DNA of 64,000 nt, from the NCBI GenBank assembly GCA_900088475.1, contig FLMG01000549.1, positions 62,001 to 126,000 of the forward strand. Reading direction: 5' to 3'. This document shows positions 5,040 through 13,364 of the stretch, one piece after another. Within the stretch, counting starts at the first letter, position 1. Each line of letters opens with the position of its first letter. Source of the DNA: Hyphochytrium catenoides. Taxonomy: Eukaryota; Protista; Hyphochytriomycota. Made by a program: the position numbers and the translations under genes. Under the pieces are notes generated by a model. It did no database searches. It saw nothing but the letters and a program-made list of their open reading frames with translations, and was not told the DNA's origin.

Positions 5040-8000
5040 TTATGATGCGGAGACCTCGTGGTATGCCCATGATAGCCAAGGCATCAGCGCCTCCAAATCT
5101 TCCTTCTCCACGGTGGCGCCACACCAAATCCTCAGTCCTGCAGGAGCATCACGGTATGCACCAATATCCAGTGCCACGCCTTCCTTTTCCAGTAGTGCCA
5201 CCATAGCCTTTACCTGACATTGATGGGGAAAAGTTAGCCGCTTTCCGACGCCTCGCTAGATACTAGCGAAGAACAAACACTTTGGACTAACAAATGGGAT
5301 AGAACAAACTAACCTTCTCAGGTGCCAGCTTCAAAGTCAAGCATACAGATGTGTTGGATCTCGTTGCCTGATCCTTCGCAAGGAAATCAATCCAGTCATT
5401 TTCCTGAACAAAGTTCTCCAGAACGCGGAAGTTAGCCTGACTGCGGCCAATCAGTCCATCCAAACCACCGATAGAGTCGGCCCATCGCAGTGCGTCAAGA
5501 TAGTCCTCCACACAGAGCATTGATGGGGTGTTGATCGTGCTGCCCTCAAAAATTGCACGGTCAACCTTGCCCTTTTTCACCATACGGAAGATCTTGGGAA
5601 GTGGTCTACAGGATCGATAGCAGATACAATGTAAGGGTTGGCCATGTCAATGGGTATACGATGGGGACGAGAAAAGGAAGAGAACGCGCAGATAAGAATG
5701 CAAATGAACGGCACCGGAAACATTGACAAAGCACATATTCCCTTTGCTCGTTAGGACACGCTCACGCTGTAAATCGATCAGTGTCTTTTCACTATCTCCT
5801 ACCTGGGTGGCGTGTAAGTCTCGAGTCTTTCAACCGCTTTAGGGGAGAGGATGAGCACTCCGTGTGCACCCTCTCCACCCAGAACCTTCTGCCAGCTGTA
5901 GGTGGTGACATCTACCTTAGGCCAGTCAATAGGCATAGCGAAAGCAGCGGAGGTTGCATCGTTGAAGGTCAGGCCTGTCCGATCCTCATGAATCCAGTCT
6001 GCGTTGGGAACCTTTACGCCACTGGTGGTACCGTTCCAGGTGAAGATGATATCGTGGTCCTTGTTGGTCTTCTCAAACGCGGGAAGCTCACCATAGTCCG
6101 CCTCAAGCTTGGTGACGTTCTCTAGTTTAAGCTGCGTAGAGATGTCTCCGAACCAGCCCTTTCCAAAGCTTTCCCAGTAGCAAACGTCGACAGGCTTGGC
6201 ACCAAGCATAGACCACATCGCCATCTCGAAAGCCCCAGTGTCCGAAGCCGGGACAATACCGAGAAGATAGTCCTACACATGTTGGAGACGCAACAGGATA
6301 ACAGATGGAACCAGTGAGAGGATCTCTCAAGAAAATTCGCAGTAGTTAATACGGCAACTAGACGTAGGCTTTCCAAATTTGCAGAGCTCGAGGTAGATAG
6401 ACCGAGAAGTCCAGCAACAAAAGATGGAAAGGCGTAAATAGCTCCGCTAGAGTATCTGACCTTAGGTAGCCCGAGAATGCGTTTGCTTTCCTCGATTGCC
6501 AGCTTAAGTTGGGACTTTCCAAGCTTCGACCGATGTGAGCGGCCGAGGGTCCAGTCGTTGAGCTTAGCAAGACTGTAGCCTGGACGCTTTTTGCATGGTC
6601 CAGAGCTGAACTCGGGGTTTGCCGGTCGGACGGCAGGCTTGGGGTTGACGCTTACGTAAGCAGATGCCTGAAGAGGCACATTAGAGTGCAGGTTAGCCCA
6701 GGGTACGGGAAAGACGAGAGAATGACAACTGAAGCATGCTTACAGCGGTGCCCTTCTGGTCGTTAAAGGTGTCAAGGCCAAAGTTCGCTGGCAAACTCAT
6801 TAAATGGCAGGTTCTAGGGTTGTGCACAAATGGGAGGGAGCGGATCTCATCCAAAACGTCTTCTGGCACAGGGTCATCAAGCGTAATGACACCTAGCGCC
6901 TCTCCTCCAGCACCTATGAGAAGAAGTGAGACTCTGCCACTTCCAAAGGAAATTCCTTGAAGGTGGCACTGCTAAGACGGAACTGCTCGTAGTTCTTCAG
7001 CTTTGTGTACCTGTCCTGCCGAGCTCGAATGACTCAATGTTGATGCCTGCCTTGGCGAGGATAGAGGTGACCTCTCTCAACACTCCGGGCCTGTCATCGT
7101 TTCTGAAAAGGAGCATCTCGCCCTTTGGCTGGATGTCCGTCTGTATAAGAGTGGAGAACGATGGGGAACTGTTAACATACCTGGTGAGTCAGATTCTTGC
7201 AGCCACGACCATAAAAGTTATAGACGTAATAAATAAAGGTGAAAACCGCACATAGCTATGAGAAGGTCAAGTGCGTCACTTTCAGCCCCCATGTCCAGTG
7301 CTGATGGTCGCACGGGAGAAATTGGGCATACCTTAAAATTATCAATCTGAACCAGGCGAAGTTGATCCGTCCCGTAGATAGTGCCGGAGATTCTGGTTGT
7401 TCCCTTCTCAGTTTCGAATGCGATAGTCAGCTGGTTGCTATAGTTGGCGCCCTCAACGGTTGCCTTTCTCTGCTCCTCCACAGAAAGACCCATATCCTCT
7501 GCCAGAGAGAGGGCATTTACAAAGTTTACTTCTTCCTCTAGGAGGTTCGAAAGCACGCCCTTGACTACTGAGGTGGTCAGAACCTCGGACATCTCGGGCG
7601 CGGATATGCTTTTTCCCTATAATAAGATTGAGAGAAAGAGCGATGAGATGCAGGACTGAAAGAGCTCTCTTGCATACGTGGACAGGAGGAGCATGTTCTT
7701 CCAGCAAAAAGGGCCAGTTGATGGTGTTTTGCAGAGAGGACCCTAAGATATGTCGAGTTTCGCAGCTGGACAGGAGTGTGCCCACACTTGAACGTTATTA
7801 CCTCAGCGATAATATAGATTTTCTTCAGCTTCTCTCCCCCTAGTAGCTGCGCCTGCATGCTGCCTAGCTTCTCTGCTAGCTCGAGGTAGGGCATGAGCTT
7901 GCTCCTCTTGGCGAAGTCAATATTAGGAGCGTTAACAACACCAACAAACTCCTTCCCTTCCATGGCGTTGACGAATTGCTTGGCGATATCGTGCGCAACA

Positions 8001-9778
8001 CGGACTTGAGCGTCTTTGGTGGATGCACCTAGAGTGACATGTTACCAAGAATGGGGAGACCGAGAGAGAAGCAACTGGGAGAAAACATGGATGATTGAGG
8101 AAGAAGAGGAAAGATGTTCAAAGCACTAGAAGAGGAATCATTGTAGCCCTACTTACCCAGATGAGGTGTTGCAATGATCTTAGGGTGCTGAATAAGGTCG
8201 TAGGTATCATCTGTTGGTGGTTCCACGCGATAGACATCCAGAGCAGCACCCGCCACCTACATATTGTATGGACATCAGTTGCTGCAGATGGTCTATCTTC
8301 CTTGGCATTGGCAACAATCCAAGAAGCATCTATCCTTGACTGTTCATAGCAATAACAAAATATGATGTCTACCTTCCCACTGTTTAGACCTTCCAAAAGT
8401 GCTTCCTCATCAATGACGCCTCCTCTGGCACAGTTGATAATCCTTACTCCATCCTTGCACTTGGCAAGCGAGTCCTTGTTGATTAGGTTCTTTGTATCGG
8501 CACTATGATTAACAGCCTGTTTAGCTTCTTCTTTCGATACTTATGTCTCTCAAGAAGACTTCTAAAGCACTCACCTGAGCGGTACATGAAGACTGATAAT
8601 GTCACTCTGTGCGTAGAGCTCATCAAGGGTGACAGGGGTAATGTTCGACAACTTGGAAGCAGACTCTGAAAGGATCGGATCATAGCCAATGGTGGTCATG
8701 CCAAAGGATTGGCACCACCTCGCAACCTAATCACAAAGCCAGAAAAGATATTTAGTTGACAGTCAGCTTCAATTTCCTAATTTTCTCCCTTAGAGAATTC
8801 CCGCAATGCACCATCTTCCCATATGTTCGCAATCAGGACTTACCTCGCGACCAATTCTGCCCAGACCGACGATGCCAATAGTCTTCCCGCTAAGTTGTCT
8901 ACCCATGAAGCTCTTACGATCCCACTTGCCGGCCTATTACGCAGAGAAAGTTAGTATACACAAGAACGAAAAGGCCTCCAAGCTTAAGAGCTACCTTCAC
9001 ACTAGCATCTGCCTGTGGTATGTTTCTCATAAGAGACATCATAAGGGACATGGTGAGCTCGGCTGCGGACATTGTGTTGCCACCGGGCGTATTCATGACT
9101 ATGACTCCGCTAGTAGTGCAGGAACCAAATGAAAGAACAGGGAAACGACCAACGTAAGCTGCCTGTCCAACTCTCTGAATGAAAATCTCCATGTTGCCAC
9201 TTACTGCCTAGTCGCCGCAGCCACATCAATGTTATCTGTTCCTGTGCCTGCTCTACCAATAAGCTTCAGATTGGTACCTGCCTCGATGACGTCCTTCGTC
9301 ACCTGGGTACCACTACGAGTGGAAAGAGGTCAGGTTGAGACAAATAGAAGAGCCTACGTAAATTCCCTACCTTCTAACGATAAGACCGTCGTATTCCTTG
9401 ATCTCCTTAAGCAGATCCTTAGGGTCCTTGAAAGTCTTCTGCACCACATCATGGCCGTGGGCGCCAAGTACATCCACGCAGACCTATAAGCAGAGCATTA
9501 GTGCACTTGAAACAGCAAAAGTAGATGACATTGTTCCCCCTCGCATAGCTACGAAGGAGGAAAGTGCAACAACAAGGCTGAGAAGAATACACCTGGACTA
9601 TAAGTGAAATCGGGCAGCGGAAACGGCTACGGCACGGTACCTGGTCGATAGGATCTGAGCATAAAATCCTCGCCAGGGCTGCAGTAGAAGCATGAAACTG
9701 ACGTCCCTGCGAAACTCTCAAGCTCTGCTCAATGGACTTGAGGGACAAGCGTGAGGCTAATGAAGCCGTCTTCAACAT
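5040..9778 (-). CDS. serA-serC: Bifunctional D-3-phosphoglycerate dehydrogenase (type I, ASB+ACT) - phosphoserine aminotransferase fusion with mitochondrial-type presequence; ~16 exons
   Basis: PGDH motifs [45 protein letters not shown] motif NDDRPG...GINI. An open linker runs across phase-0 intron 6668-6743 into PSAT: [44 protein letters not shown] (PLP Lys), [26 protein letters not shown]. Stop TAA at 5042-5040. Confidence 0.92.
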
Positions 9779-11296
9779 GTTTTACTATTTACTGCGCTGA
9801 TTAAAGCAGCTGAGCGATGTATTCAATCAACGGTGTCTATTGACAGTCTCCGACCGCTGCCAACAGAGGATAAGAAGCTTCACAATCTATGGAGATGGGA
9901 ATTGAGAGGATGCCCTTGCTTTGCAGGCCCGATGGAGATAGAGGAAGCAACAGAGACAATGTTCTCTTCCCTTAGTCAAGCAGGTGGGCATCCGGAAGAA
10001 AAGCTTTGCTCTTTATAGAGGCATTATTAGGGAAGGGATTGAGCCTGAGAGCGTTCTAGTAGGTTAGATGAAGGTAACTTGCGGACCAGATAGGGAGAGA
10101 CAGAGATCTGAGAGATACCAAGAAGATTCACTTACTCCGTCTCTATGACAAGGATTTACCTTCAGTAGCGAAGACAGAGAGAGCCACAAATATCAGCAAA
10201 CTGAGGTAGAACACATATAAGGTTCGCATCTAAAGGAGAGGAAGGAGGGAAGCAGCATCACGAAGCAAAGTCCTCTCGCTCTTCTGATGCTCTCTTTGAA
10301 GAGGAAAGATATGAAAGCTACAGAAGGAAGCTTTCAGTTATACTTTCCGAGTGGAGGAGTCCACCCAGCCAGAGGCCTTACTCTTCAATATTCTGGTCAG
10401 ACCGGATAAACAGGCCCACCCATCTTCTTTGAAGCAACCAGCTTAATTGCCGAGAAAATACCCAATAGAAGCCTGAAAGCTTCAGAGCGTTTATTTGAAT
10501 GTTTCAAAGCTTTCCACACACAATCGGCCTACTCTATGAACCGATGGATCCTGCGAAAAGTACTTTTCCTGTTTCTCAGAGGGGAGGTCAGAGGTGGTTG
10601 GCTCTGGTAGCTTCAACATTTAGCGGGAGCAGAGCGTGTGCGGGATGAATCATCATCATCTCAGTCCCCCACACCGCCGAGGATGGGACGATGGGCCCAG
10701 CCATTTGCAGTACAAACCTTAGGCAAATCTAGGAAACTGATCGAGCCAGTTCTAGATCCCCTCCAGTACTGGACATAGGACCATAAACTGTGCCAGAAAG
10801 ATCGCACCAGGAAACACGCCCAGCCGTCGTAACCATGACCAAGATGACCAGCCCACTGCTCCCAGCTGAAGAGCTGATGGATCCTTGAGAACACAGAACT
10901 TCAGATCTTCCCCAGGAGTTGTATCGACGTATTCCGAACAAGCGCATTGACTATCCCTGATGATTTCTTTGAGAAGTGGCAATCATAGTGCTGATCGTGG
11001 CACAGAGCAAGAAGCTGAGGTTTCCTATTGCTGAACAACAGAAAGACCATAAAGAGGATCAACACCGATGCAGCGGCGTCAGAGAGTGGAGCCAAGACTG
11101 GAGAGAATGCAGCAGGCTCCAACTTGTTGAGCGCGGCTATCGTTCTACTTTTCATAAGGGGAAGCTGAGTGTTGAAGCTTCACAGTGAGGTATCTCCTGC
11201 AACGGCACCTACTTCTTTGTCAGCATAGTGAAGTGGCTACTGCTTTATCATCTTTATAAGCCCCAGGCCTTAGGCGCTCATAGGTCATCTTCCACA
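9779..11296. promoter_or_regulatory. Divergent intergenic region, putative bidirectional promoter of the two serine-pathway genes
   Basis: Lies between ATG 9778 (- strand) and ATG 11297 (+ strand). No credible intact gene inside. Promoter function is inferred from geometry only. Confidence 0.45.
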
Positions 11297-13364
11297 ATGT
11301 TTATCAGCAAGTCACAGCGGGTTGCATCAAGGTTAGAGCCTGAAATAGCTTTTCTTTTATCTATAGCCAGTGCTTTGCTAACTAGTCCTTCGAGTTTAGT
11401 CTGCTACGTAGTGGCAAACGGCTTCAGCCCTCAGGACAGCGGGCAAACCAGTTCCATCAAAGTGCATCTTTGGCTGCTAGGATTCTCTGCAGCGATCCCA
11501 TTGAACCTGTCTGTCGTGAGGTTTTCACTGCTAGGGGCCATTCGGTAGATGAAAAGAGCAAGCTGTCTGAAGAGGAGCTATGCGGCATCATTGGCCAGTA
11601 TGATGGCCTTGTCGTCAGAAGTGGCACCAAGGTTACGCCCAGAGTCTTGGAGGCAGCCGGCAAGCTTAAGATTGTCGGTAGAGCAGGCACAGGAGTCGAC
11701 AACATTGATGTCAAAGCTGCCACCAAAAATGGGGTTCTGGTTATGAACACACCTGGAGGGAACACTCTTGCAGCGGCTGAGCTCTCTTTCTCCACACTAT
11801 GCGCTCTCTCCCGTAACATTCCAGCAGCTGTAGCATCGATGAAGCTCCGCAAGTGGGACAGAAAGAAGTACACTGGCGTAGAGCTTAATTCAAAGACAGT
11901 TGCCATTATTGGTCTAGGGAACATCGGACGGCAGGTGGCAGAATGGGCCAAGGCGTTCAACATGCGAGTGATTGGGTTTGACCCCGTCATGAGCGCTGAG
12001 GTTAGTGCGGCTATAGTGGATAGGTTACCTCTTCGTTCCAACCTTGCTTACCACCCCTCGCGTAGGATGCTGCCAAGTATGGCATCGAAAAGCTAGAACT
12101 GGACCAGATCTGGCCACAGGCTGACTTTATTAGCTTGCACACGCCCCTCAATGATGGCACTCGTGGGCTTATCAATGATGAGACCATTGCCAAATGCAAG
12201 AAAGGGGTTCGCATTGTCAACTGTGCTCGTGGAGGTAGAGTCATTTCAAGACGTCGTCCACTTCTGTTTGACAAGGTTTTTCTTCATTAATGTTCCGGTT
12301 CTTCGGCCTGCTCCGTCAAGTCGGTTGTTCTGTGGTAACAATGTTCCTTGCAAAGAGCGAAAGGATCCCTCGCTATGTCCCGCAGCCCATGGTGTGTGCT
12401 TTCCATGCCGTGACCTAACTCACTGTGACCTCTAGGTGTCGTTGATGAAGCCGCTTTACTACGGGGATTGGAGAGCGGACATGTTGCTGGAGCTGCGCTT
12501 GATGTCTATAGCCAGGAACCTCCTCCAGAGTCTCTTAAACCCTTACTGACCCATCCCAAGGTCATTTGCACCCCTCACATCGGCGCCAGCACTGTGGAAG
12601 CGCAAACCAAGGTGGCGGAGCAGATTGCCGTTCAGATTTGCGATGTCTTTGACGGAAAGGATTTCTTCGGAGTCCTTAACGCTTCGCATATGGAACTCGC
12701 CAGCAACCCCGATCTTAAGCCTTTCCTCAGCCTGGGCGAGTCTCTTGGCTCTCTGCAGGCTCAGCAAATGGACGGCGGTATCTCTAAGGTCGTAGTCTAT
12801 ACCAGTGGTGGCCGGGACATTGATATCACCACTCGCAAGGCCAGAGATGCTCTCAAGGCAGCCATTCTAAAGGGTGTTGTCGCAAACTTCATCGAGAATC
12901 CTGCCGAAGCCAATCTCATCAACTCTCCCTCGACGGCTTCGGAACTGGGCATTGAGTTCGAGTTCTCGGACCAGCTGCCGGTCGCAGTACCGCGATTGGG
13001 CGCTTATCGCAACCTATTGGCTGTCAGCGTAGTATCAAAGGAAGGCAAGAGCTCCTTCATCGCTGGCAGTGTGTTTGGTACGGAAGGAAAGGTGGTTCAA
13101 ATGGGCGACTTCAAGGAGTTCCCCATCTTCACACCTCAGGGTACCCTTCTGTCGTTCAACAACGAGGACAGACCTGGCGCGATTGGTGAGGTGCTGAAGA
13201 TTGTGAGCGATGCTAACCTTAACATCGCTAGTATGGGCGTCGGCCGCCAGGAAGGTACCAAGGCCTTGGCTTTCCTGATTCTTGATGACGAAGTTGACGA
13301 GAACACGCTGGCGAAACTCCGCCAGCTGCCAGATTTGGAGAATGTAAAGACTGCATCTTTGTAA
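11297..13364 (+). CDS. serA: Stand-alone D-3-phosphoglycerate dehydrogenase (type I, ASB+ACT) with mitochondrial-type presequence; 4 exons
   Basis: ATG 11297 plus intron 11332-11399 gives [48 protein letters not shown]. Motifs [35 protein letters not shown]; ACT NEDRPG...NLNI; stop directly after the ACT domain (KTASL*). Confidence 0.93.

Follow-up and report, generated by a model that had tools for sequence, protein, structure and literature searches.

Based on a computational analysis of 64,000 nucleotides from the hyphochytrid Hyphochytrium catenoides (contig FLMG01000549.1, positions 62,001 to 126,000; this whole stretch is called the window below and positions are numbered from its first letter), we conclude with high confidence that the minus strand between 9778 and 5040 carries one nuclear gene for a bifunctional protein of 966 amino acids, in which a phosphoglycerate dehydrogenase (PGDH) is continued by a phosphoserine aminotransferase (PSAT). 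With the same confidence we regard the gene as an orthologue of a published stramenopile fusion that has been vertically inherited, both enzymatic activities being predicted. The architecture has been known in oomycetes and brown algae since 2009, and the window gene adds a member to it. A preliminary description of this stretch had proposed a single PGDH-ACT-PSAT polypeptide and had suspected a trait of oomycetes or of stramenopiles as a whole. The proposal is supported by spliced contigs, by colinear orthologues and by relatives in which the fusion is a single open reading frame (ORF). The suspicion was right, as the fusion is to be found in PMC2705460, in PMC5715807 and in a 2026 preprint.

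Gene structure and the fusion junction

The model was built on the minus-strand sequence and consists of 16 exons and 15 GT-AG introns of 58-197 nt. Its spliced coding sequence of 2901 nt translates into the 966 residues with no internal stop, and the predicted mass of the product is ~105 kDa. Along the protein the order is presequence, type-I PGDH, a linker of 27 residues and a PSAT of the SerC_2 type. The parts of the gene are these:

5040..9778 (-): whole gene, ATG to TAA, based on the open spliced frame, the joints seen in relatives and colinear orthologues
9778-9641, 9483-9371, 9312-9205, 9109-8995 (-): exons 1-4
8933-8844, 8726-8575, 8502-8373, 8256-8157 (-): exons 5-8
8028-7802, 7616-7332, 7140-7011, 6913-6744 (-): exons 9-12
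6667-6461, 6272-5803, 5605-5314, 5213-5040 (-): exons 13-16
9641..9778 (-): exon 1, ATG and putative presequence for mitochondria, up to residue ~38
8157..9483 (-): exons 2-8, substrate-binding and NAD-binding domains of PGDH, with Pfam 2-Hacid_dh_C on exons 6 and 7
7332..8028 (-): exons 9-10, intervening (ASB) domain of PGDH, PF19304 PGDH_inter at E=2.6e-16
6801..7140 (-): ACT domain, exon 11 and the beginning of exon 12, PF01842 ACT at E=9e-11
6744..6800 (-): first part of the linker, residues 568-586, end of exon 12, past the point where stand-alone PGDHs stop
6668..6743 (-): intron 12, the fusion intron, 76 nt, phase 0, GTAAGC...CTCTAAT...TTCAG
6461..6667 (-): exon 13, final 8 residues of the linker followed by the N-terminus of PSAT up to ...GRSHRS, with no ATG
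5040..6272 (-): exons 14-16, remainder of the SerC_2-type PSAT with the pyridoxal phosphate (PLP) lysine in SWQK, stop codon at 5042-5040

At the 5' end a stop codon lies directly upstream of the ATG. Exon 1, which already encodes the start of the PGDH domain (RILCSDP), is covered by a contig of a relative that extends further upstream. Two borders fall within recognizable elements: intron 11 (7010-6914) splits the ACT domain, and the TPHLG motif straddles exons 8 and 9, with the codon of its final glycine running into exon 9.

The place where the two enzymes meet can be defined closely. In alignments, stand-alone bacterial PGDHs end opposite ...NPRTCHL (residue 567) and stand-alone PSATs begin opposite PKPAVRP (residue 595), so that the linker comprises 27 residues and intron 12 lies inside it. 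Within the linker, a P-x-N-F-x-L-D stretch (PANFGLD) resembles the DPxFRxD linker motif of ochrophyte fusions. The preliminary description had read the frame as open past the ACT domain, and it does remain open to 6744, where exon 12 ends with ...NDQKGTA; exon 13 starts at 6667. It had also taken 6743-6668 for a phase-0 intron that contains an in-frame stop, and this too is borne out: the stretch measures 76 nt, and, were the intron retained, the TAA at 6695-6693 would terminate the protein 16 codons further on. Reading of the frame likewise upholds its statement that neither a stop nor a new ATG precedes PSAT. Going upstream in the PSAT frame, the first stop met is 6742-6740, with no ATG between it and exon 13 when the letters are read by hand. 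The first in-frame ATG inside PSAT corresponds to M672 (...FEMAMWS), and a start at this position would shorten the domain by ~75 residues at its N-terminus. Lacking a start codon of its own, PSAT can be produced only if intron 12 is spliced out.

Is the predicted joint found in RNA? The evidence on splicing consists of contigs of two runs, aligned to 5040-9778: X1 is a plant metatranscriptome, and for X5 no library type is recorded; both come from relatives of the window's organism. Exact joints in these contigs correspond to 13 of the 15 predicted introns, that at the junction included, which is far beyond what chance would give. The preliminary description had named a transcript spanning 6744/6667 as a check, and the spliced joint is seen in contigs of X5 and of X1. 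A 166-nt contig of X5 joins 6666 to 6743 (cut +1, that is 6667/6744), with 41 and 125 nt on its two sides. A contig of X1 ending at 6667 has a 25-nt overhang, which matches the end of exon 12 (6744-6768) at 23 of 25 positions. None of the X1 and X5 joints occurs in the DNA-like runs X2 and X3. When the window is compared with X1 and X5, 33 of the 36 exonic differences listed fall at third codon positions by hand count; for exon 13 the figure is 11 of 11, and the exonic difference at 7077 is a synonymous AGA/CGA change. Indels at half depth in X2 and X3, at 7212, 7286, 8058, 8563, 8772 and 8795-8798, are all intronic in the fused gene. Their presence in both DNA-like runs points, as a separate matter, to two haplotypes, as in a heterozygous diploid.

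From the exact joints, the third-position differences and the confinement of indels to introns it follows that frame, exon borders and junction are genuine and subject to purifying selection, the RNA being that of a relative and not of the window organism. The analysis gives a correct model of 16 exons for this gene, which an automatic annotation might easily break in two at the linker intron.

The same contigs bear on a further question, whether the fusion is real but intron 12 is partly retained, giving rise to an isoform with PGDH only that tunes the ratio of PGDH to PSAT. Not one contig of X1 or X5 covers intron 12, transcripts with retained introns are usually degraded, and an unfused PGDH paralogue is already present next door. 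Although a stop 16 codons past the linker part would leave a complete PGDH, and the intron is not shared with Ascophyllum, we consider such regulated retention unlikely.

The two enzyme halves

Profile scans were run exon by exon and the full spliced model was compared locally. For the PGDH half, Pfam matches were obtained to 2-Hacid_dh_C (exons 6 and 7), PGDH_inter (exons 9 and 10) and ACT (exon 11). In NCBIfam, exons 9-11 cover positions 280-487 of the type-I PGDH profile TIGR01327, with positions 280-444 contributed by exons 9-10. A search of PDB with exon 9 gave no match. When set against stand-alone type-I PGDH (TIGR01327; the bacterial SerA of 525 aa), this half matches end to end, the boundary falling at the linker end.

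For the PSAT half, exons 13-16 match the NCBIfam SerC_2 models TIGR01365 (positions 1-373) and NF002841 (positions 4-385). Exon 13 alone accounts for positions 4-65 of NF002841 and 1-55 of TIGR01365, and the start of the PSAT profile falls within its first 8-14 residues. The bit scores for NF002841 on exons 14, 15 and 16 are 282.7, 144.1 and 87.7, which together with exon 13 sum to 593, against a cut-off of 477. Scores of serC_1 on the PSAT exons are negligible, so the half is of the SerC_2 type. Pfam is nearly blind to single PSAT exons, on which Aminotran_5 stays below its cut-off. Like its partner, this half matches its stand-alone counterpart (SerC_2 PSAT, TIGR01365/NF002841, ~380 aa) end to end, but it is without a start codon.

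The preliminary description had stated that all catalytic motifs of both enzymes are intact, and locating them confirms this. PGDH displays GLGRIG for NAD binding at residue 181, CARGG with the catalytic arginine at 264, DVYRVEP with the glutamate of VEP at 289 and TPHLG with the catalytic histidine at 312. PSAT displays FSSGP at 606, GRSHRS at 628 and SWQK at 781-784. The lysine of SWQK (residue 784) is the PLP lysine and aligns with the QK of the solved PSATs PDB 3FFR and 2FYF. Judged from its sequence, each half appears complete, with its catalytic and cofactor motifs in place, and both activities are predicted.

Conservation was assessed over 68 full-length orthologues, in which 195 columns are near-invariant, meaning at least 95% identical. 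The window protein agrees at 193/195 of them. The exceptions are T109, which is valine elsewhere, and Q171. These replacements, of a near-invariant valine and of a glutamate invariant in 68/68, are the points that speak for a fusion in which one half is catalytically dead and serves as scaffold or regulator only. We find this very unlikely, given that all known catalytic and cofactor motifs are present beside the 193 matching columns, that in either half nearly every difference from the relatives is synonymous, and that the window has no other PSAT.

Residues 1-38, which precede the conserved PGDH start, include by composition count 6 basic and 1 acidic residue and 15 serines, threonines or alanines. 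By analogy with the oomycete enzyme, this N-terminal extension is a putative mitochondrial presequence.

Orthologues, published fusions and neighbouring genes

A phmmer search with exon 14 in a 50%-identity library returned several proteins whose PSAT match lies far from the N-terminus, for example P0012 of 948 aa. A word-index search with P0012 then yielded ~70 proteins of 920-1000 aa with 2-Hacid_dh, PGDH_inter and ACT. The spliced model is colinear with these ~70 fused proteins over residues ~30-962 at 54-60% identity. An Atlas search with exon 14 returned fragment clusters for the most part and, by structure, one oomycete cluster of 951 aa. Members of the fusion family include the following:

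Oomycete: Pythium oligandrum (P0211)
Bigyra: Cafeteria
Brown algae: Ascophyllum, Undaria, Nemacystus and Cladosiphon
Other ochrophyte: Chrysoparadoxa
Chrysophytes and synurophytes: Ochromonas, Epipyxis, Chromulina, Chlorochromonas, Mallomonas and Spumella
Outside stramenopiles (proteins P0157, P0161, P0290 and P0214): Diphylleia rotans (CRuMs), Ancoracysta twista, the ancyromonad Fabomonas tropica and the ciliate Pseudocohnilembus persalinus

Quick maximum-likelihood trees, which contain several long branches, were used to place the window gene. In the full-length tree of 69 fusions, the window and Pythium proteins form a clade (SH-aLRT 93) that is sister to the ochrophyte fusions (95, Gyrista clade), with the Cafeteria-type fusions outside. 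This order is what the relationships of the organisms would lead one to expect for a pseudofungus, and the tree lends no support to a fungal origin of the gene. In the tree of the PSAT domain all fusions fall into one clade among SerC_2 enzymes (96), and the stramenopile fusions, Pythium and the window included, group at SH-aLRT 93.

Fusions of the reverse order, PSAT-PGDH, were also encountered (L005 42-2855; P0068, P0027/P0152 and P0098; 937, 681 and 670 aa) on transcript-like contigs, and their PSAT halves nest within the clade of the forward fusions. Another protein, P0001 (735 aa), has two tandem SerC_2 PSAT domains (3-365 and 372-734), each ~49% identical to the PSAT half of the window.

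Gene structures differ widely within the family. The Pythium oligandrum orthologue is one uninterrupted ORF of 2943 nt, and a 1008-aa orthologue on an ENA contig is likewise a single uninterrupted ORF. The Ascophyllum gene has at least 18 exons, and its linker and PSAT start lie inside one of them (aa 463-515), so that the linker intron of the window cannot be read as a trace handed down from the event that joined the two genes. The H. catenoides genome paper gives the number of introns per gene as 3.64, and the fused gene is likewise intron-rich. That two adjacent genes have been wrongly joined, with PGDH ending at the TAA of the 76-nt stretch and PSAT made from a non-AUG start or its own promoter, can appeal to the in-frame stop within 6743-6668 and to a GTG at 6679 in the PSAT frame, but is hardly credible when spliced contigs of relatives join exons 12 and 13 exactly at the predicted sites, PSAT has no ATG, intron-poor orthologues are single ORFs and other fusions have a homologous linker.

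How does the window gene compare with what has been published? A PGDH-PSAT bifunctional enzyme of oomycetes was described in 2009 (PMC2705460). In 2017 a mitochondrial PGDH-PSAT fusion with a SerC_2 PSAT was reported for oomycetes and brown algae, and in addition for Thecamonas (PMC5715807). All three PGDH genes of Phytophthora infestans, the fusion PITG_00133 among them, are predicted to be mitochondrial, and tagging with tdTomato confirmed this location for an unfused P. infestans PGDH and for PSP (PMC5715807). Knock-out of PITG_00133 halves growth of P. infestans (2026 preprint), and expression of the fusion is on record in the literature as well. We found no paper that links Hyphochytrium with phosphoglycerate dehydrogenase or reports the fusion for hyphochytrids, and the supplements of the H. 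catenoides genome paper make no mention of PGDH or PSAT domains.

By domain content, common reading frame, full-length homology and place in the tree, the window gene is an orthologue of the PITG_00133/Ps142688 family. The oomycete enzyme (PITG_00133 of P. infestans, Ps142688 of P. sojae; P0211 of Pythium) resembles it in domain order, has an N-terminal presequence where the window protein has a putative one, and is its nearest neighbour in the tree. The Pythium oligandrum protein has 980 aa, compared with 966 aa in the window, and the two are 56% identical and colinear over their whole length; the Pythium linker is longer than that of the window and cannot be aligned with it in detail. The oomycete gene is a single ORF, whereas 15 introns, including the one in the linker, interrupt the window gene. 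In Phytophthora a gene for mitochondrial phosphoglycerate kinase (mtPGK) adjoins the fusion gene (PMC5715807), whereas none turned up in a crude motif scan of the window. Brown-algal and chrysophyte fusions share the architecture and reach the highest identity to the window protein, with maxima of 60% for the whole length and 75% for the PSAT half. The introns of Ascophyllum are long (12.7 kb in total) and none interrupts its linker, unlike in the window. The fusion of Thecamonas trahens, the only non-stramenopile case of 2017, has the same domain order according to the description in PMC5715807. The mitochondrial TPI-GAPDH fusion of stramenopiles offers an analogy only: it too combines consecutive enzymes behind one presequence, but the enzymes are unrelated.

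We further propose, tentatively and with a chance that we place a little short of even, that the fusion is wide in eukaryotes (Cafeteria, chrysophytes, Chrysoparadoxa, Diphylleia, Ancoracysta, Fabomonas and a ciliate) and that its oomycete and ochrophyte versions are orthologous, because the window gene bridges both, and not separately acquired as the PSAT tree of 2017 suggested.

The fused gene has a neighbour of related function. An unfused type-I PGDH paralogue lies at 11298-13364 on the plus strand, head-to-head with the fused gene; it begins with an ATG at 11298 in a short first exon, has a basic presequence of its own and ends in ...ENVKTASL right after its ACT domain. It is 40-56% identical to the PGDH half of the fusion, which rules out a recent duplicate of that half and marks it as an old paralogue. 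The start codons of the two PGDH genes are ~1.5 kb apart, and between them several overlapping ORFs of 72-84 aa are present on the minus strand at 10661-11155. Should these include a small gene, the PGDH pair may not be driven simply from a single divergent promoter. A crude six-frame motif scan of the 64 kb revealed no signature of PGK, TPI, GAPDH, enolase or SHMT, which is a weak negative. A run of N at about 1170-1245 is an assembly gap and appears as X in the ORF translations.

Serine synthesis by a fused enzyme

What would a fused PGDH-PSAT mean for serine synthesis? The protein would be imported into mitochondria by means of its basic presequence of ~38 residues. There the PGDH half is predicted to oxidize 3-phosphoglycerate to 3-phosphohydroxypyruvate, and the PSAT half to transaminate 3-phosphohydroxypyruvate with glutamate to phosphoserine; these reactions are steps one and two of the phosphorylated serine pathway. 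The oxidation of 3-phosphoglycerate is thermodynamically unfavourable, and because of this the tethering of PSAT should lower 3-phosphohydroxypyruvate. A PSAT that is tethered and co-expressed at 1:1 may keep the intermediate low near the active site, and such kinetic coupling or channelling would pull the unfavourable dehydrogenase step. In published work, channelling or co-regulation is offered as a hypothesis only.

Several points weigh against the main conclusion of a bifunctional fusion gene. The joints in RNA derive from relatives that are ~92% (about 90-95%) identical and not from the window's own organism, and the 25-nt overhang of the X1 contig at the junction is shorter than the 31 nt of the bridging rule. 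Within PGDH, Q171 (codon 9268-9266, minus strand) places glutamine where 68/68 orthologues have glutamate, within the G-x-E-L-x-GKT stretch that immediately precedes GLGRIG, the NAD-binding motif. Mitochondrial targeting is argued from composition and analogy only. Finally, a kinetic test or direct evidence of channelling was found in the literature for no species.

The position of the window gene between the oomycete and the ochrophyte fusions supports one fusion, vertically inherited within stramenopiles. With several deep lineages added from the databases, the fusion reaches much further across eukaryotes than was visible to the 2017 paper. H. catenoides would synthesize serine by way of the same fused, probably mitochondrial PGDH-PSAT as oomycetes.

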